Origin: Chlorokybus atmophyticus
Lineage: Eukaryota; Plantae; Mesostigma and Chlorokybus algae
NCBI GenBank assembly: GCA_009103225.1
Contig: RHPI01002910.1
Span: 376,579 to 440,578 of the forward strand
Reading direction: 5' to 3'
DNA: 64,000 bases
The number at the start of each line of letters is the position of its first letter. Positions within the stretch are counted from its first letter, which is position 1. This document shows, piece after piece, positions 7,964 through 22,806 of the stretch. Below the pieces are notes generated by a model that ran no database searches, had not been told where the DNA came from, and was given only the letters and a program-made list of their open reading frames with translations. A program made the position numbers and the translations under genes.

Positions 7964-10900
7964 ATGTCTGGGGCGGACGGCCTCACCGACGAGAAGGTAC
8001 TGCATTGGCCTTTTTGGTGGTTGTTGCTGCGAGCATTGCCTTCGGTTATTGTTGACAGCGTTCACATTCCTAAACCAACAGGACTGAATGATGTTGTGGA
8101 TGGATATTCTTTTTAGAAAGCACCTACTGTTGAGAGCTTGCTTTGTGTGTGCTGAGTTTTTGTCTGTTCGCTTGTTTGTTTGAGCTCATGGTACAAGCAG
8201 TTGTGATGTTTGGTAAGCCGCTCCATCACAACAGACAGGTGCAAGTCTTCTTGATGATCGGGATCATGCTGGGTTCCTGACACAGCTGGTTATTTGACAT
8301 GACGTTGCTATTCAGTACTGATCAGTGTCAAGCAAGCTACGAATGCGCACATTGGGTAGCATAGAAGCTACGCAATCGCAGTCACGATCTTAGTGCTCTC
8401 CTTTTCATGCATGCTTGCAACAGAAGGCCGAACATTCTAAACACTGCTTAAACAGTCCCATTGGGTGAACTGATGCTTGTACACTGCAATCATTTTGTAC
8501 ACTCACACACACAATGTCATTCCACAAACAGGTGTTGTCGCGGGAGATCCCGTGGGAGACGTACGCCACAGCAAAGCACATCTCAGAGAAGGACCTGCAG
8601 CTTCTACGGAGGTTTGACAAGGCCGGCAAAGATGTTCAGGCGTCCCTCCTTGGCACGGTGCGCATTGTGGGAGGTAGTAATTTAGCGATTCAACTCTTCA
8701 AGCGCATATACCGGAATGAGTGCATCAACAAATGACTGAATGCATGAAGTGCAGCAGCACACAATCTGTGAAATGATGGACTAATTTAGTCCACAGAAGT
8801 AACAGTCAATTCCAGGCTGTGAGGTAGTTAAGAAGGCAAGTGTGGATAGATTTATATCAACAGACGTAAGTAGTGAAGTGACTGAACAGTGACATGCATG
8901 CAATGTCCGAAAAACTGCTCAATTCTTTGTGAATACATCCAGGTGACTATCTCTAACCTCTTATAATCAGAATGAGTATGCTCGTGACTGTTACTGGCAG
9001 GATGGTGCTGGGGTGTTTGAGGCTCTTCTCAACATGTTGAAGACGGTCACAAAGGACGACACGGTGCAATACGTCCTCGCCCTCCTTGATGATATCCTTA
9101 CAGGTGTTCGTCTATAGTCATGATCAACCCATGCAACAGCCTGAGGGTTGGAAAGCTCTGCTGACTGCTGCTTGCCTATCTTACAGATGACCCGGCTCGA
9201 GCTCAGATATTCCACCAGATGGCACAGAAGCTTGAAGAAGGCAGGGCTTACGCTCCAATTGTCAAGTAAGTACGCGTGAGTTGTGGTTGAGACCGCAATT
9301 GCCGCTCGTACTATGCACACATCTTGTTGATTGGCAAGATGTACTCAGTAGACAATCAGATCAACGAATTCTATGGCTTTTGTTGCAGGTTGCTGGATAG
9401 GGGAAACTGGTACATACTGGAAAAGACCTGCAAAGTGTTGTCGAGGTTGCTTAGGCAAGTTGATTGTCGTTGTTGTTGCTGTTGCTGTTGTTGGGCCACT
9501 TCGTCTCTAGCAAAGCCTGAACGAAAGCGTTGATGTCTGATGCAACAGCACGCGGCCGAACAAGTCTGCTACATGGCAATCGCTGGTGGGAAGCGTGGAC
9601 GCCTCGGCACCCTCTTCTTCAAACGGCTCCGCACCACCCTACACCCAACAAGTTGTCCTTACGCTCATCGACTGGTGCTGTGGCCAGGTTGGTGATGCCT
9701 ACTTGTATATCTGCATGAGTATGTTGCTGTGTATGGCATGTAAACATGTTGTGTCTGTGCCATGATTACATGTTACGGTTGGTACATGCACGCGCGCACG
9801 CGTGTATGCATGTGTTCAAGGGTTCGTGCATGCTCACATATATGCACTCAGTTAGATGCCTTGCAGTATTGTTGTTACTAGGTACATGTGCATCGACATT
9901 GCTTGTGTATGTGTGTTTGGATGCCGCAGCTGCGCAGTGGTAACGGTGTAACCACTGCGCAGCTGCGGCATCCATCGGATCCCAATAGGGCAGTGGCGAC
10001 GGCCGTGTCGGGGCTGTCATTGCTGCTGCAGGAGCCGTCAGCACGCATTGTCTTTATCCACAATGGCGGCCTCACCCTCCTGGTGCCCATCCTCAAGCCC
10101 AGCAACTCGCCCAACACCGTGCAGGTTTGTTGATACGCCTCTCACACAATCATACATACACATAGAGGTCGCCTGTTGTAGTGATGAATATACCATGCAA
10201 CTTTACCAACTTGTTGTTGCTGGGATTGTTTTTGTGTGACAGATTCTTTATGAGGCGGCGCTTTGCGTGTGGCTTTTGTCCTTTCAACAGCAGGCGGCAG
10301 AAGCCATGCCCAAAACCGGCGTGTTGGCCGCTCTTGTCGACGTGAGGACCCGCGCACACACATGCGAGCATTTTCCACTCACACGCTGTAGCAATGCTGA
10401 CGAGTTTGCACACATCCCAACTCAGGTGGCGAGAACGGTGAGCAAGGAGAAGGTGCTGCGTGTGGCGGCGCTGGCGCTGAGGAATATGCTGGAAAAGGCG
10501 GACTGCAGCGCGGATGCCGTTGATATCGGCCTACCGCACGTTGTGCGCAACATGCAGCAGCAGGTGGGGGATTATGCAGTTCAGTCTACGGTATACACGT
10601 GTCATGCGTGTTGCGCGTGCAGTTGACGTGCAATGCACCTTGCTACAAGCGAATGATATCGTGCATTCACGCGTCTGCAGCACAACCATGTCAAAGGCTT
10701 ACATAGCTCTCAGTGTGGGTAGCTATGGTCTTGACTCTTGCATGCACACACACTCGAGGGTGCGAAACAGTGTGCAGGTGTGCTGCTTCTAGATGATAAT
10801 AGATGCGTGCTTACGCCTAAACGCAGATAGTACACAAGCTTGCTGCAATAGTCGTGTATAGCAAGCGTGCGCCAATGTGGCACAGCCTTTGCACCAGTCT

Positions 10901-12218
10901 AGCTTTGGCTTCATTGTTGCAGGCCAACTTATGTGCATACATCACCTGTTGCCGGCTGCAAGTGCATGTGTGTGCACGGCCTGGTGCATGCACACACAGC
11001 ACAAAAGCTTCGTCACATCATGCTTATGCTACAAGTCTCTAGCATGGTCTTGCCACCTGTCAGTGTCACCTTGTGTTTGCCATGGGCTTTCGACATGCAC
11101 GCACACACATTACACATGCATCCGCAGCGCTGCTTGTTATCGGCCACTGACACGCGCAAACAACTACAATCCACCTCCGCTACATGCAGGCATGGGGCGA
11201 CGAGGACCTTGTCACGGCGCTTGAACAGCTGAGCGAGAAGCTGCAGGAGGCCGTGCGCGAGCTGACCTCGTTCGAGCGGTACCGACGCGAGGTGGTGTCG
11301 GGCACGCTCACGTGGAAGAACTCCGCGCACAAGGACCCCAACTTCTGGCAGGAGAACATTGCCAACCTCGCCAAAGAAGACTACCAGGTACAGGCGTTTG
11401 CAATTTGCAACGGCCTCTGTACAGCTGCAGGCGCATGCACATTCAGCATGTATCAGTTGTAAGGTTGTGTTCGTGCACGTGAGTGGGTATGTGTGCATGC
11501 ATGTCTATGTGCGCGCCAGCTTGCTTGCACATGCATGCGTCTGTCAATGTGCATATTGTGCGTGTTTGGTTGCTTGGTACTATGACTGCTTGGCTGATTG
11601 CAGTTACACTTACATGATACTCCACATGTTCTGACCTACTCGCATGGCTACGCTTCTTTCTCCAAACCATACTACCTCGCTCCTGACTCTCTCCCCTTGT
11701 TGGTCGCACAGGTCATCCGTGTGTTAATAAAGCTCCTGGAGTCCTCGCGTGACCCCGTCACGCTGGCCATCGCCGCGCATGACATTGGCGAGTTCGTGAA
11801 CTACCACCCAGATGGCCGCCAGATCGTTGTGCAGGTACGGGCAAGCGTGCGTGTGCGTGTGCGTGTGCGTGCATGTGTGCATGCGTGTGTGTGTATCACA
11901 ACAAACTGCAACTGCAAGTGGACCTAGTTGTAACAAACGTTATGTCACATATACATGCAACACACAGCAACATAGGCGTGTCCATCTGTGCATATATGGA
12001 CTGTTGCCTGGCCTCACGTTTGTCAGCTTGGCGCATGGGGTGACGTGTTTATTTTACTTTTTGTGTTGTTGACGTGTATGGTGCATGTCCACGTGCAGGA
12101 CCTGAAGGGTAAGGAGCCCGTCCTGAAGCTGATGACATACAACGACCCCGCCGTCCAAAAGGAGGCCCTGTTTGCCACGCAGAAAATTATGCTGCGGTCC
12201 AAGATTGTGAGCGCTTAA
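7964..12218 (+). CDS. VHA-H: Vacuolar H+-ATPase subunit H, 12 exons
   Basis: Spliced product MSGADGLTDEKVLSREIPWETY...WYILEKTCK...ILYEAALCVWLLSF...KEKVLRV...WGDEDL...LTSFERYRREV...HKDPNFWQEN...AAHDIGEFVNYHPDGR...VQKEALFATQKIM. Contains a GC-AG intron at 9455-9548. Confidence 0.95.
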
Positions 12219-13514: not shown

Positions 13515-14952
13515 CTAGCTTGTTGGATAAGGTGGTGGAGGCTCTTGTGGAGGCGGCGGTGATGCAAACATGTGTTGATGTGGCACGGATGCGTGTTGAT
13601 ACGGCTGGCTTGCGTGATGATGGTGATAGTGGTACTGTGCTGGGGTCGGGTACACGCCTGTTGCATGTTACACATAATTAGCCACCCATCTAATACACAT
13701 GCACGTGTGCATCCGCGTGCGCATGGACATCGCATGTGCTGTGTGTCCACCTGCTTGCTGTGGGTATGCTGCTGGACTGCCAAACTGGCCGTAGCCGTGC
13801 TGGTCTTGAGGAGGCAAAGGATGGCAAGGATGGTTTGGGTGGGACATCTGCTCTGGCTGCTGAGGCATGAAGGCGTTACTGTAGTGCTGCTGTTGTTGTT
13901 GTTGTTGTTGCTGCTGTTGTTGCAGCAGAGGCGTGTTGTGTTGCTGTGAGCTGCTGCCCGCCAGGCTGCGCATCTCACTATCGGCCCACTGCAGTGAAGG
14001 CGTAGACATGAGTACGCCAGTGAGGAGACACAAATTATACACTATATACACGTACACGTACACGTACACGTACACACATGCACACATGAACTCCTCCTCA
14101 CCCCCAACTTCAATGGCCTTCCGTACAGCGCGATGCCCTGCAAGAGGCGCATCGCGTACGCAGCGCCGCTCTCGCGCACAAACTTCACAAAGGCGTAATT
14201 CCTGTCCAATCAGAAGTGGTCGGTACACATGAGATAGATGTGGGAACTGGAATGACTGTGCAACTTGCCTTGGGCGATCGGTCGTTTTGTCGCGGGGGAT
14301 GGAGATGGAGTCTATGAGGCCAGCTTGGATGAACAGCTCGTACAGAAGCCTGTGCAGGTGGGCGGGTGGGCGGGTGCGTACACGCGTGCGCACACGCATG
14401 TGCAGTTCAGCGTGTGTAGGTTTGTGCGCATGCATGTGTGCATGTGCACTTGCATATACATGTGCACACGTGTACGTACACGCCCAAGTCTGCTTGTGTG
14501 CAGGCACATGCGAGGACGCTTTTGCACATGTGCATATGCGTTCAGCCGATGTGCATAGTCTTGACGCGTAGGTGCGTGCCTACTACGATGATGCAGATTG
14601 CGCATTCGAGACTTTGGGCACATTGTGTGCGTGTGAAATATGGCTGCGCATCAACCGCTGCCCATGCAATACACACACAGCTACATTGTCTGTCACTCTT
14701 ACCTCTCGTCCACGCGCTCGTCCAAGTTGCCTGCACCACACATTCGCACAACTTAACGTGCGCACGAGTATACGTGCGTGTGCCATGCGTGGGGGTGGGG
14801 GTGGAGTGTGTGGTGGGGGTGGGGTGTGGGGGTGGGTGTACACGCCGAGTAGTTGAGATTGCACCGGTATGCACGATGCGTATGCTAGCACACGTGGCAC
14901 GCACGCACGCAACGACCATAATCAAGTAAGAGATTGCGAGACACACATGTCA

Positions 14953-14996
<44 letters not shown>

Positions 14997-15468
14997 NGAG
15001 AGAGAGAGAGAGAGATTCATACGCATCAGTACACGCGAACACATGCATCCAGAACATCATATACAAGCACGGCGTATGCAATGTGCTACTATACGTACCT
15101 GTTCCCACCTAACCCCCACTCCTACCATGCCACACACAATGCCACCGAATGCCAATGTAGGAATCAAAATGACACACCTAATTTTAAGGCAGAAGTGTGT
15201 GTGTGTGTGTGTGTGGTATGTGTGTTGGGAGGGAGGGAGGGGTGGGGTGGGGGGTGTCAGCATGCACATACACAAGCATGTCCTCAACAACAGCACGCTC
15301 ACAGTGTCCACCCGCCAGTGTATATGTGCCCAAGCCAGCCAGTTCACATCAGGGGTCTGAAGCTGCAACACAATGATGCATGCCATGCCATGGATGGGTT
15401 CCCACTTGTTTGTCGTTCATACCCGCATGCAGAGTCATCAGCGCCCTCTCCGCCTCCTCGGGGGACAT
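13515..15468 (-). CDS. Single-RRM RNA-binding protein (RBM7/RBM11/SF3B4-like) with Gln/Pro/His-rich tail, 6 exons
   Basis: Exons 15468-15423, 14730-14703 (28 nt), 14349-14269, 14201-14102, then two tail exons. They give TLHAGNLDERVDERLLYELFIQAGLIDSISIPRDKTTDRPRNYAFVKF...GIALYGRPLKLG, with RNP2- and RNP1-like motifs. Confidence 0.8.
14955..15015. repeat. (AG)n microsatellite in RRM gene intron 1
   Basis: About 30 AG units with one N, seen directly. Confidence 0.97.
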
Positions 15469-15803
15469 CTCATGGACATCACCGCCCAGGGCGGAACACA
15501 CACACACACACAACCCCAACCGACACAAGGCAAAGAGAAAGTAAGAATACAAAGGTTTGAACAGGGGGCGGACAAAGACCAGTAAAACAAACAAAACTTA
15601 CTCACTCCGCCAGGCACTAACACAACAACAATCAAACTACACTCAGTAAGCTGAAGCTCTGAAGCCACATGCATTAAACCATCAGACACTTGACCTAATC
15701 GAGTGGCCCAGCACATCAGGGCGGCGGCGACGGCGACGGCGGCGTGCTTGGCAAGGGGGATCAGGGGGGTGACTTGCGGCCTCGGCCAGCACCGCCTGAC
15801 GCC

Positions 15804-18800
15804 ATGCAGCAGCAGCCGGCGGCGGCGGTGTGTCTCATGCGCTTCGACGGCGGGTCCAGGGGCAACCCTGGCCCAGCTGGGGCAGGGGCTGTGCTCACGA
15901 TCGGCGACAGGATTGTCGGTGAAGCCGCCGTCTTCATAGGCCGGTGAGGCCATCAGCATGCCGAGCTATCTCCATCTCCATCTGTTCATTGTCAAGCTGA
16001 TGGTGTTGGTCCGGCTGAGCAGATCTGCCAGTGATCTAGCATTGAGCTTGCATGCGTGGCATGCATTGCCGTCATTGTCGGAGAAAGAGAGTGTATTCGC
16101 ATATTTGGGTTTGACTACTGAAGGTGCCTTTCTTCTCCTCACATCCAGCGTCAGCCAGCTGGCTGCTTGCTCTTACAGTTGAGCATCCCCTCGTTTTATG
16201 TTGCGGATGAAGGCCTGATGATGTCATCCGGCAGGCAGTGTGTTGCATGTTTGATGGTGTACTTCAATGCTTGCGCTTGTTGCAACCGACACGTCTTTTC
16301 GTTGACGAGTTTGACGTCAATGCCAGACCGCATGCAATGTGCCTTGCTCGTTTAGTTCCATCAAGTTTCTTGTCATGGCTCAGTGTGCTGTTTGTTGGTT
16401 CAGTGTGCAAAATCTGTTGACAGTCTCAGCGCATGCAGCAGCCCGTGCCAAAGTGCGCGGCTACAGACAGGTTGAATGCATTGAAGCTGAGTTTGTTGGG
16501 CTGTCTGCGTGCATGCAGTGCCACGAACAACGAGGCAGAGTACACCGGTCTCATTGTCGGTTTGGAGATGGCGCAGCAGCTGGAGATCCAGGAGCTGAGG
16601 GTGGAAGGAGACTCTCAGGTCAGTGCACACAATTACATACACGCATGCACAAACCCACACACTCGCGCACATACATACATACCTGAGTTGCACGCACCCC
16701 TGCACGCGTATACACTTGTGCATGCGCATGTACCAGTGCATGCGCACATGCATGCCTACTGTTGTACCCAGCCACTCGTTGCTTCTGACCTGCTGTGTGT
16801 ATCATCTCGCTCAGTTGATAGTGAGGCAAATGAACGGCGAGTACCAAGTTAAGCAGCCTCACCTTCAACTGCTTCATCAGCGCGCGCGATCCCTTGCACG
16901 CTTCCACAACAGGAAATGCACCATTTCATACATCCCGCGCGCGCAGAACTCAAAAGTGAGCTTCTTGTACATTTGCATATTGATTGTTGATGTATTGCTT
17001 TGCATGTGACTTGATGTTGTTATTGATGTGGCAGGCAGACTCTTTGGCCAACGAAGCCATGGACACGCAAAAGTCCCGCACTTTCGTCCAGGACCCTGGC
17101 TTGCAGCTGGGGCAGCGCGTGGTTGATGATGCACGCAATGGCCAAGAAGCCACTTGCATGGCGGCAGCGAGCAACGTTGCCACAAGGTGAATGGCGCTTG
17201 TTGTGTCGGTCACACAAAGCCAACAGTACGTTAAGTAGATAGGTAGGCTCTGCAATTACAGCCTGAAGAGTGGGGCTCAGTTCAGTCCTTTTTCTGCTGG
17301 CCGCACAGCAGCAACGGCGGAGCTTCCACAATGAGGACGCCGCAGCAAGCAACTCCCATCGAAGCCCAAGCACAACAATACCAACATCCACAACAACAAC
17401 AACAACAACATGCACAACAGAGACACGTGTCCTCTTCTTCTGCTCTGCAGGCGGCTGTTCAGGCCGGCACATCTGAGCAGCAGCAGCCTGGCGCTGGGAG
17501 GCCTGCTGCTGGCGGGGTTGAGAGTGTGGGCTTTGCGTTGCCTGGCCCAACATCAACCACAACAACTTTCCCAACATCCCCAACACCCTCTACAACAACA
17601 ACATCATCAGCGCAGAGGCAACAAGAGGTACTCTGCCGCTGCGGCGTGCCCGCTTCCGTGCACGACGTGGCCGGCAAGTTGGGACCGAACACTGGCCGGC
17701 GGATACTCGCTTGCGCGGCCGCACGCTGCGAGTTCATCGTGTGGCAAGGCACAACATCCCCACCACCACCACCACAACAACAACAACACAACAATAACCC
17801 GGTTCCAGCTGCCCCTGACTGCACTCACGTCCCAACGCACACCTTTGAGATTAGGTATGTGGCTCTGGTGTGAACGTGTGTTGTCTGGAGCAGTGTTGTT
17901 GTGTAGTGCTCACGCTCATGTTGTTATCTGTCAGCCCCAAAGAGCCAGCTGGCAGGGGTCATACACGCTCGGCGTATCGCGTCGACGATGTGTCCGGCGC
18001 CTTGCAAGTGGCTGTCCCGTTCGCTTCAGCTGCTGTCAAGGCTGCGATAGAGAGTCAGATGCACAGCGCTGCGGTGGCCGACACGCAGCAGACCGTCGTG
18101 TACACCGTGCCGCCGGCCAACATCTCGCAGGTGATGCTGTTGTGCCATGTTATGTCTGACTTGTGTATAATTTGTATTAGACCACACACATATTATGGTT
18201 GTCCTGTCCGAGTGTCCTGGCCAAGTGTTGATTACAATGTTATTCATGCTACAAGTTGGGATGCGTATATGAGTGTCAACCCAAGTGGACTTGGACAACT
18301 GTTGTGCGCGCAGGCCGTGCGGGTTCTGAGCCAGTTTGAAGTCGTGCCGGAGGACATCATCCGCATGGGCCACAAGCGCAAGTAAGCCTTTTTGTCAAGT
18401 GAATGTTATATCCCCCCACTCGCGGTGTCAGTCAAGCACACAGCACGGTGTCTCTTACACACGCATGCGTGCACACACACACACACATACAACATGCGCC
18501 TTCCCCGGCCGCAGAGTGGAACCTCTGGCGGACGGGGAGTATGGTGCCATCCGTGTCACGGTCGTTGGGCAGCTGGCTGATATTGAGCTACCGCGTGCCG
18601 GGCACTTGGTACATGCGCGCGATAAGCATCATGCATCCCACCCAACAGATATACACAAGTCTGCCTAAGGGTTACTACTGTTAACTCATGAGCGCGCAGT
18701 GTGTAGCAGCAGTCCTGTGTGACATGCAAATGCAGAGTGTGACATGCACAACCTGTGTGGCGCAACCTCACTGCAACCGACTACTTCCATATTTGTGTGA

Positions 18801-19541
18801 TTGTGTGGTGGTTTGGTCTTGATATTGTTGCTACTGCTGCTCACTTGCAACTGCGTGCAGGACGCCCTCGTGAGGTCCCTTGATGTTGACTCGCGCCAGT
18901 GGCACGAGCGGGGCAAAGTGTGGACAGTTATGGCCAACACGTTGCCGAGTCTCGCGCGGCGGTGGAGAGACCTGGGCTACGCTTCTAACGACAATTTCCA
19001 GGACTACCTTTCAACACTATGCGGGAAACAGTTTGCTGCCACGTCACGCAACATCCCAGTATTGCGTCCGACGGCGTCGCCATTGAGTAGCGTTGTGAAG
19101 CCGGAAGATGTTGTGTACGTTACGGGCAGCATGGGCCGGCGCGGGTCGCCATGGTGGAGAGCGAAAGTTAGTATTTTCAACACTTCACCAGGTCACGTGG
19201 ACAGCTTGTCTCAGGAAAAGTGTTGACACTTACACTGCTTACCCCCAACTGTATCAGTGTTGTGTAAATTATACCTGTTGAGCAATGTCTGCAGTTGGTG
19301 CGGTGTGCAATTTTGGGATGACGATGATGACGGTGATGATGATGATGTTATTGGTTGTGACTATTTCGTTGTTGACTCTCTGGAGGTGGCAGCACCCTTA
19401 GGTCGTGACCCCGAACAGGGCTTCTGTACAAGCGAGCTACAGCGGGCTTTGTGTCTTGTGCAGCAAGCTGCGATGTCTCCTTGTTACTTGTCAAAATGTA
19501 TCATCTCCCTCTGCGGGCCCAGCAGTATCATGGCAGTATAA
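15804..19541 (+). CDS. RNase HI (archaeal/plant-like) fused to Q-rich linker, GRF-type Zn finger and two HARP-like repeats; 3' end uncertain
   Basis: FDGGSRGNPGPAGAG...ATNNEAEY...VEGDSQLIVRQM...YIPRAQNSKADSLANEAMD carries all four acidic catalytic residues. It is followed by CRCG...GPNTGRRILAC...CEFIVW (GRF) and ...LVRSLDVDSRQWHERGKVWTV. Nine exons join in frame with GT-AG junctions up to ~19170; the last exon is ambiguous (stop ~19320 or 19541). Confidence 0.8.
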
Positions 19542-20151: not shown

Positions 20152-22097
20152 TCAATGTTGCTTTGCAAACACTGTCTGCAGCCGTTCCTCCTCGGGCAAG
20201 ACCTCCCAATTCGGGCTCTGCATGGCCCTCAGCCACCTGAAGTCATCCACCTGTTGCCACAACTCATTCTCCCCATCCAGCTGCGCAGCCGCCAAATCAC
20301 TCTCCACACCCTCATACTGATACACATACGGTGCGAATCGCACGGCACACGTGTGTTCGACAATTGGCCTGCTCCTAACTCTGAGATAGAAATCACTCCA
20401 ACTTGTGTTGTGTATGCGTATCTGATGCGAGGCCAACACGAGCACGCTGTCTGTCACGTCTTCTATGAGTACAGCACCGGAGACGGGCCCGCAGTACACG
20501 CGGCAATTGGTCAATTTGTTGATGAAGAGGGCAGCCAGCTGGCCGCACACGTACACCGTGCAGTCGGTGAGGTTGGAAAGAGTCAAGTCCTGGCCCTGGA
20601 TCTCTGATCTGTTCTTCACAATGGTGATGTTTGTTTCATTGCGGATGCTGCAGCCATCAGACAAGTACGAGCAGCTGGTAGCAGCAGACTCCAGTTGTGT
20701 TGTACTGGCACCGTTACTGTTGTCATTGTCATTGTTATTGTTGTTGTTGTTGTTGTTGTGTGCTGCCTGTTGTGTTGTTGACGAGGAGGAAGGAGACTTT
20801 TTACTCTTGCCGGCGAATGCGAACTTGCGTTTGGGCGCTGCTTCTGCTCGTAGTGACGCGATGGTTTCTCTCAGGGCTGTTATGGCGGCTTGGCAGGTCC
20901 GCACGTCGTAGGCTGGCAGGTAGTACGCCGCGTCCGCCACTTCCCTTTCCAACTCAGCAACCTGCAAACATGAAGCAAGCAAACCATTTTCAGCTCGGTT
21001 TCCAACTTTGCCAGGAGAATAGAACACGTCGTCGTATATCAGTACTGGATGTGATGAGTGTGAGTGTTGCGATGCTTGTTGTCGCATCCAAGTGACACCA
21101 CCCTGACCCTGCCCAAGCGCATGAGCGCGTGTGCATGCGTGCATGCGTGCGTGTGTATGCGCGCAGGTGTGAGCACGCGCGTGCACATGTTCGTGTGTGC
21201 GATCGTTTGCATGGGCATACGCACATACGTGTGCGATCGTTTGCATGCGTCCATCCGCATGTATTACAGTGCATCCACCTGCGTGGCGACCTCATCCACC
21301 CGCCTTCTCCTCTCCACCTCCGTCTCCGCGTCCACACTCACGCTCGCGAAGCTGTCCCTGACTGCCTCCTCGCGCGAGCGGAACCGCTGCCAGAAGCGCG
21401 ACGCGTCCTCGGACGGGGCGGAGGAGGCGGACAGAGCCTCGCGGCGACGGTGGATGTCGGCCTTACTGCAAATTGAGTGGTATGAAATTTGGATACTGAT
21501 AGTGAGAGACGGTGACGTGGACTTGTAGGCGAGTATGTGAGGTGTTGGTGTGTGCACGCATGCACGCGCATGTGCATGCCCTTGCAGCTGTGGTACGTGT
21601 GCATGCTCGCGTTCGCATGGGTGCGTGCATGCGGACTTCGCACAAACACACAACACAACACCACGAACGGTCAAACACCTTGGTAGACCACCAGCCACTG
21701 ACAATCACAAGTACACGCAACAAAACGAACACTCTTCACACACATGAGCAGAAAAATTATGGTTGCATATGCAAAACGAGTCAGGTTTATCTGGCGAGCA
21801 CGGACTTTTGGTTTGAAAAATTGTCGAGGGGAATACCGTGGCATGCACTGCATGTGCACACCCAATCACTGTCAAACAACATGTATATATCGTGAAGTTG
21901 CTACAACATGTGTATATATTGTAGAACTCAGCACCAAGCAAGCAAACAAACAATCCATCAATCAAGCAGCTCACTGACTTGACTTACCGTGCAGCGTCGC
22001 TGGCAGCTAGACGGTCGGCCACCCCGGACTCCCGCGCCGCCAGAGCAACATCCACGCCGGTGTCAATAGCTGCGTCTGACTCCTCCACAGCCACCAT
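20152..22097 (-). CDS. TBCC: Tubulin-folding cofactor C, 3 exons
   Basis: YYLPAYDVRTCQ...PKRKFAF followed by the beta-helix LSNLTDCTVYVCG...GPVSGAVLIED...ASHQIRIH...DFYLRVRSRPIVEH...RFAPY...VDDFRWLRAMQSPNW. Confidence 0.92.
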
Positions 22098-22806
22098 CTT
22101 CCCCTCCTGCTCCTCCTCCACTGTCTCCTGCTCCTCCTCCTCCTGCTCCGCCGCCGCCAGACTGCCCAGTACGGTTAATTTGGCTAACCAGGCCTCGACG
22201 CAGTTACAACGTAGCCGCCCTTTGCCGTATCGAAGGCGCTGTATCGCGTGAGAAAGATACCCGACGTGTACGCGTTACGTCTACCAGCCACACGACGAAT
22301 CAACGTAACCCGCAGCCCAATGGAGTCAGGTCGCGTTGTAAGACAGGACATCCTGCTTGCCTTCACATGTAAGTTACAGCGAACCTTTTCCCCGCAGCAA
22401 ACCGACCTCCATCTGCGGACGCTTGTGACATGACGAATCCAATACTTCCTTAGATAATCGTCAAGGCGTTGGGCACAGCCTGCAACTTAGTAAGTAAGAT
22501 GACAGATCGCAGGGTCTCTTTACATCCAGGGTCGTCAACGCAACTACAGTGGATAAAAGGGTCTCCCCTACGCGATCTCTGATTGGCTTCCTTACTGCAA
22601 GCGCAGGCCAGTCTTTGATCGAGACGCGACGCGCGCTGCTAGTTAGCAGTTTTCAGCCGCGGCGGGGCATCGCGGGCTGGGCTAGGGTTTCGTTCAACTT
22701 TGTGCATTTGGTGAAGGGTGCTGTGCGCGTGGTTGGTGTGGTCGGTGTCATCAGTAAAGGCGGCGAAGGAGTCGAGGGTGTGGTTGCCAGTGTGATCTTT
22801 TGCGAA

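Follow-up and report, generated by a model that had tools for sequence, protein, structure and literature searches.

A candidate RNase HI–GRF zinc finger gene with a relative-less C-terminal region in the streptophyte alga Chlorokybus atmophyticus

We analyse here a predicted gene on the forward strand of a 64,000-nucleotide (nt) stretch of the genome of the streptophyte alga Chlorokybus atmophyticus (assembly GCA_009103225.1, contig RHPI01002910.1, positions 376,579 to 440,578; scaffold Chrsp76). The whole stretch is called the window, and its first letter is position 1. As read here, the gene joins a ribonuclease (RNase) HI catalytic domain to a GRF zinc finger and to a long C-terminal region, and it lies between an RRM-type gene and the gene for tubulin cofactor C (TBCC). 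The features are collected in Table 1. Database searches and fold predictions were run exon by exon, or on parts of exons, the pieces being taken by reference to the sequence.

Exon structure, RNase HI domain and GRF finger

The gene model consists of nine exon pieces spanning 15804-19226 and eight introns of 79-575 nt, all of which have GT..AG borders. The phases agree across all the exons and the exons sum to 1803 nt, i.e., 600 codons and the TGA, which bears out the in-frame splicing described in the original prediction. Three of the introns lie inside the RNase H domain itself. In exons 6-9 the G+C content of the third codon position (GC3) is 0.65-0.86 and that of the second position (GC2) is lowest in the proposed frame, with the G+C content of the introns being 0.37-0.54. 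Moreover, when codon scores are compared over all six frames, the proposed one ranks first in every exon from 5 to 9, and every intron has a negative score. By these measures the composition of exons 6-9 looks coding-like. The predicted product is most likely one protein of about 600 residues.

It is noted that the matches of exons 1-3 to RNase HI are colinear. On the RNase H domain of Rv2228c (3HST), exon 1 corresponds to residues 5-30, exon 2 to residues 44-75 and exon 3 to residues 77-121. The same order is seen with Pfam RVT_3, which is matched by exon 2 at E = 1.4e-7 (profile positions 39-70) and by exon 3 at 2.1e-5 (positions 71-114), and with the NCBIfam archaeal RNase HI model of 143 positions, which is matched by exon 2 at 2.3e-7 (46-78) and by exon 3 at 1.9e-8 (79-123). 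The other RNase HI structures matched by exons 1-3 include those of Sulfolobus tokodaii (2EHG/3ALY) and Halobacterium (4E19/4NYN) as well as 3U3G/4H8K, and the best NCBIfam matches are the cellular archaeal and bacterial RNase HI equivalogs. All of the D-E-D-D motifs are present, namely FDGG in exon 1, AEY and GDSQ in exon 2, and K/ADSLAN across the junction of exons 3 and 4, and the claim of a catalytically complete RNase HI therefore stands. Exon 4 alone, which is too short, gives no family or PDB match, and ADSLAN is assigned by its motif and by its position directly after model position 123, where the exon 3 matches break off. Judged from the sequence match over the whole fold, the predicted catalytic domain is a real RNase HI of the archaeal type (Sulfolobus/Halobacterium-like, RVT_3).

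The RNase HI domain begins just about 10 residues after the ATG, and there is no obvious presequence. A hybrid-binding domain of the Pfam Cauli_VI type was not found there, and the open reading frames in the approximately 320 nt upstream have no family match, in agreement with the earlier statement that this domain is absent.

The GRF finger claimed for exon 5 is likewise recovered. A 50-residue cut-out (17610-17760) scores 28.6 bits against Pfam Zn_ribbon_GRF (PF06839), above the gathering score of 25.9, while the whole of exon 5 scores 25.1 bits, just below it. The finger aligns with both GRF fingers of NEIL3 (7JL5, 7OMK) at E of about 1e-4, with the cysteines and the GPNxGR core in register, and weakly with the GRF finger of APE2 (5U6Z). 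The four zinc ligands and the core of the pattern CxC...GPNxGR...C...C..F.W are present. From this pattern and these matches, exon 5 is predicted to carry a true GRF zinc finger.

The sequence also indicates that the RNase HI domain and the GRF finger are very probably joined in one gene. If the RNase H part ended at the alternative stop 17188-17190, only about 140 nt would separate it from the next ATG in the frame of the finger (17331). Since these 140 nt would have to hold the 3' end of one gene together with the promoter and 5' leader of the next, and are far below the spacing to the neighbouring genes, two tandem genes are unlikely. On the other side, the in-frame TGA stands right behind the donor of exon 4, which makes an RNase H-only product possible and tells against the long protein as the sole product. 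A transcript that keeps intron 4 (122 nt) would code for an RNase HI of about 178 residues on its own, perhaps a short isoform under regulation. As a separate observation, intron 6 (183 nt; within 17936-18379) keeps the frame and contains no stop codon, and its retention would give a read-through of exons 6 and 7 with an insert of 61 residues.

Table 1. Features of the gene and its two neighbours (positions within the window).
Feature	Position	Strand	Content
Exon 1	15804-15943	+	Start codon, first RNase HI strand, first catalytic Asp (FDGG); 3HST at E 1.7e-5; NCBIfam RNase HI models at 1.6e-6
Exon 2	16519-16618	+	RNase HI core; catalytic Glu (NNEAEY) and second Asp (EGDSQ); Pfam RVT_3, NCBIfam and PDB matches
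Exon 3	16815-16955	+	RNase HI core, colinear continuation of exon 2; Pfam RVT_3, NCBIfam and PDB matches
Exon 4	17035-17186	+	ADSLAN (last catalytic Asp) at the very start, then a linker of ~40 residues; donor AAG/GTGAAT
In-frame TGA	17188-17190	+	With intron 4 retained, predicted end of an RNase H-only product of ~178 residues (open reading frame 16984-17190)
Exon 5	17309-17854	+	GRF finger between Gln/Thr/Ser/Pro-rich low-complexity linkers of CAA/ACA runs; codon score 0.10, the highest among the six frames
GRF zinc finger	17628-17747	+	CxC ... GPNTGRR ... C ... C.F.VW
Exon 6	17935-18130	+	Start of the relative-less C-terminal region, first part of claimed HARP-like segment 1; G+C at codon positions 1/2/3 0.68/0.52/0.72; codon score 0.37
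Exon 7	18314-18381	+	22 codons; predicted helix, then basic patch (HKRK); GC3 0.86; codon score 0.30; no family match
Exon 8	18515-18608	+	31 codons; first strands of claimed HARP-like segment 2; no family match
Exon 9	18861-19226	+	Rest of claimed HARP-like segment 2, linker, VKPEDVVYVT..PWWRAKV hairpin, TGA 19224-19226
RRM-type gene	13668-15500	-	Poly-Gln stretch; probable ATG ~15481
Tubulin-folding cofactor C gene	20155-22431	-	4 exons; 89-100% identity by piece (last three exons 97-100%) to EukProt/JGI Chlat1 Chrsp76S07641

End of the gene and its neighbourhood

The original prediction placed the end of the gene at 19541. GC3 drops to 0.47 past 19166, from 0.69 before, and the frame closes at the TGA, which makes 19226 the most likely end of the reading frame. 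An extension to 19541 is rejected on composition, with 19296-19538 having a GC3 of 0.48 and a codon score of -0.11 and no downstream frame being coding-like. The candidate poly(A) signal TGTAA occurs once, at 19263, and is missing from intron 4; as both neighbouring genes are without it as well, the signal is uninformative.

The neighbours of the gene are housekeeping genes. The RRM-type gene is divergent from it, with about 320 nt between the probable ATG of the former (~15481) and the ATG of the latter (15804), and the two may have a bidirectional promoter in common. The TBCC gene is convergent, its stop being about 930 nt from the stop at 19226. No terminal or long direct repeats were found flanking the locus, and the open reading frames beneath the gene on the opposite strand have no family match. 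With housekeeping neighbours and no flanking repeats, the locus is not an obvious mobile element and looks like that of an ordinary host gene.

Rfam and tRNA scans of the 13-22 kb region give low-complexity noise only. At ~14930-15010 there is a (GA)n microsatellite coding for Glu-Arg, with an ambiguous base (X in the translation), and nearby (CA)n/(TG)n runs give rise to spurious weak matches to microRNA families in Rfam. Further upstream, at 10267-12218 on the forward strand, exon pieces resemble V-ATPase subunit H by eye, for example the piece ...DIGEFVNYHPDGR....

The C-terminal half and the alternative explanations

It was claimed before that the C-terminal half of the protein consists of two HARP-type junction-recognition domains followed by a small barrel, by which the nuclease would be aimed at R-loop or fork junctions. 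We regard this explanation as unlikely, as discussed below. The strings on which it was built are present in the sequence where they were described, and may be no more than chance patterns. By eye, the pattern R.W....K.W......L..L of exon 9 resembles what we take to be the HARP consensus. Among the 30 language-model neighbours of exon 9, two are clusters labelled HARP, with scores of 0.78 and 0.77, which is weak and at a level that the tool itself rates as a lead only; Atlas language-model scores below 0.9 are attained by one third of shuffled proteins, and exon 6 has no HARP cluster among its neighbours. The low-confidence AlphaFold (AF2) order of elements in exon 6 is strand-strand-helix-strand-strand-helix. 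The HARP fold is described as five strands against two helices (PMC4666394), with which this order is compatible, and thus the HARP idea is not contradicted. Nevertheless, Pfam on exons 6, 7, 8 and 9 and on the halves of exon 9 gives no match, including HARP (PF07443), even at E<=10, in a profile test that was made on separate exons, with each claimed repeat being split by an intron. PHROGs, NCBIfam and the PDB sequences give only chance-level rows with the C-terminal exons (E 0.17-1). The HMMER search with exon 9 against 1.84 billion proteins gives three matches, all of which are repeat-protein artefacts, and reaches no SMARCAL1-like protein. No related loci were found among metagenome contigs with exon 9 or among viral contigs with exons 6 and 9, and tblastn with exon 9 against phage genomes gives chance matches only. 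Moreover, the claimed repeats are not significantly alike, unlike the two similar tandem copies of vertebrate SMARCAL1: in exon-wise Smith-Waterman comparisons against 2000 shuffles no significant repeat is seen (exon 6 with exon 9, z -1.6; exon 6 with exon 8, z 0.7). The AlphaFold models made without an alignment are unusable, having a predicted local distance difference test score (pLDDT) of 41.3 for exon 9 and of 40.5 for exon 6, the in-frame intron 6 and exon 7 together. Foldseek on the low-confidence model of exons 6 and 7 has a best E of 0.49, with no SMARCAL1 or UvsW among the rows listed, and carries no weight. As for the SH3/BAH-like barrel, no match to the PWWP, Tudor and SH3 families is found for 19011-19223, 19068-19190, 19257-19538 and 19296-19538, and only about 45 residues are left before the stop at 19226, which is too short for a five-strand barrel; VVYVT..PWWRAKV thus probably forms no more than a hairpin at the end of the protein. 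The barrel is therefore not supported, and the two HARP repeats are not borne out, though they are not refuted either. That the spliced C-terminal half folds into two divergent HARP-like modules, giving a motor-less enzyme made of RNase HI, GRF finger and fork or junction reader, is in our judgement quite unlikely.

Several points weigh against the reading of a single long gene with all nine exons. The gene model is a prediction from the genomic sequence. Exons 8 and 9 reach codon scores of no more than about 0 bits per codon, in a test that by its design favours open frames. In a collection of 1.84 billion protein representatives, which includes the annotated Chlat1 proteome (the TBCC neighbour was matched there), no protein contains exon 9. 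A word search with the open stretch around exon 5 finds this exon in none of the proteins of 114-364 residues, and one with the GRF region gives no match. Such searches reach proteins that are 0.55-1.75 times as long as the query, and a model of 365 or 600 residues would escape them. The exact look-up of six raw open reading frames finds none of them in the collection. Since the Chlat1 proteome is present and yet holds no protein with exon 9 and, among those of 114-364 residues, none with exon 5, the published annotation does not back the full model, which counts mildly against it. In addition, the lack of detectable relatives for the roughly 250 residues of the C-terminal region also fits a mis-modelled or fast-decaying sequence. 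The blank for exon 9 in the Chlat1 proteome, the absence of relatives and family matches for exons 6-9 and the near-zero scores of exons 8 and 9 would all be expected if the gene were shorter, coding for the RNase H alone (stop 17190) or for the RNase H and the GRF finger, with exons 6-9 being open by chance or left over from another gene in decay; by our estimate, an open reading frame of 120-170 codons is no unusual chance event in 64 kb of DNA with 53% G+C. By contrast, a shorter gene would leave it to chance that four further exons with canonical sites hold the phase to a stop, and that exons 6-9 all have the lowest GC2 and a high GC3 in the proposed frame, with the intervening introns being poorer in G+C. 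Besides, if exon 5 were left unspliced, the frame would end 6 codons further on as a GRF protein and the good donor AG/GTATGT would go unused. We consider the shorter gene rather unlikely. It can also be imagined that the host took over both the RNase H, of the RVT_3 type, and the GRF finger from a retroelement or a DNA transposon, the locus now being a domesticated or dead copy, as Pfam RVT_3 is the type of RNase H common in plant non-LTR elements. This is very unlikely, because no reverse transcriptase, integrase or transposase lies in or beside the gene and no repeats flank it, and because the RNase H domain contains three introns, has its catalytic residues intact and best matches the cellular RNase HI equivalogs; moreover, no look-alike stretch was found in the other scanned DNA, a blank that is weak evidence. 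Taking these points together, we consider the chances to be about evenly balanced that the locus is a host gene, previously unmodelled or differently modelled, with eight introns and coding, from the N-terminus on, for an RNase HI, long disordered linkers, a GRF finger and a tail of about 250 residues.

Proposed role and comparison with known systems

The GRF fingers of APE2, NEIL3 and TOP3A bind single-stranded DNA. Based on the host gene with RNase HI and GRF finger described above, we propose that the RNase H domain would cut the RNA strand of RNA:DNA hybrids, with the GRF finger, by analogy with these enzymes, replacing the hybrid-binding domain as the targeting part. The finger would tether the enzyme to the single-stranded DNA beside the hybrid, i.e., to the displaced strand of an R-loop or to the gap at an RNA primer, and the C-terminal region probably adds a further contact with nucleic acid or with a partner. 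What the sequence shows is the two domains, their order and the splice logic; action at R-loops or junctions is inferred.

It is noted that the known cellular RNase H1 finds its substrate via a domain that reads the hybrid duplex. If our proposal is true, an RNase H steered by a GRF finger would pick hybrids by their context (the displaced strand or the gap) and not by the hybrid itself, giving a natural test of how R-loops are distinguished from other hybrids and a possible basis for a more R-loop-specific nuclease tool. If the HARP reading were also true, the protein would be a nuclease dedicated to the removal of RNA at R-loops or stalled forks, a design not described so far. A full-text literature search turned up neither an RNase H-GRF protein nor a GRF-HARP one. 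The value of the finding is limited at present, with the architecture being seen in a single alga, the gene model being a prediction from sequence and half of the protein having neither a fold nor relatives.

Finally, we compare the algal protein with the known systems. With SMARCAL1/HARP and the N-terminal domain of T4 UvsW, the likeness lies only in a possible order of secondary-structure elements and in the two weak language-model neighbours; the algal tail has no sequence-family match to them, and the algal protein has no SNF2 motor. With the archaeal-type RNases HI of S. tokodaii (2EHG/3ALY), Halobacterium (4E19/4NYN) and Rv2228c (3HST), it has in common the catalytic domain with D-E-D-D and the lack of a hybrid-binding domain, and in Rv2228c of M. 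tuberculosis the RNase HI is likewise fused to another module, an acid phosphatase. The archaeal-type enzymes are, however, prokaryotic and either of a single domain or fused to a CobC-type phosphatase, whereas the algal gene has a eukaryotic GRF finger, a tail of about 250 residues and eight introns. The eukaryotic RNase H1 (human RNASEH1; Arabidopsis RNH1A/B/C) likewise consists of a type 1 RNase H, a flexible linker and a separate nucleic-acid-binding domain, and by analogy the removal of R-loops and primers would be the role expected for both. The difference is that in RNase H1 the binding domain is N-terminal and of the hybrid-binding kind, for the RNA:DNA duplex, while the added domain of the algal protein stands on the C-terminal side and belongs to a type known for binding single-stranded DNA. 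In this last respect the algal protein resembles APE2, NEIL3, TOP3A and ZGRF1, which likewise have a DNA-processing catalytic domain, a disordered linker and a C-terminal GRF finger, the distinction being that the catalytic partner of the finger is here an RNase H.

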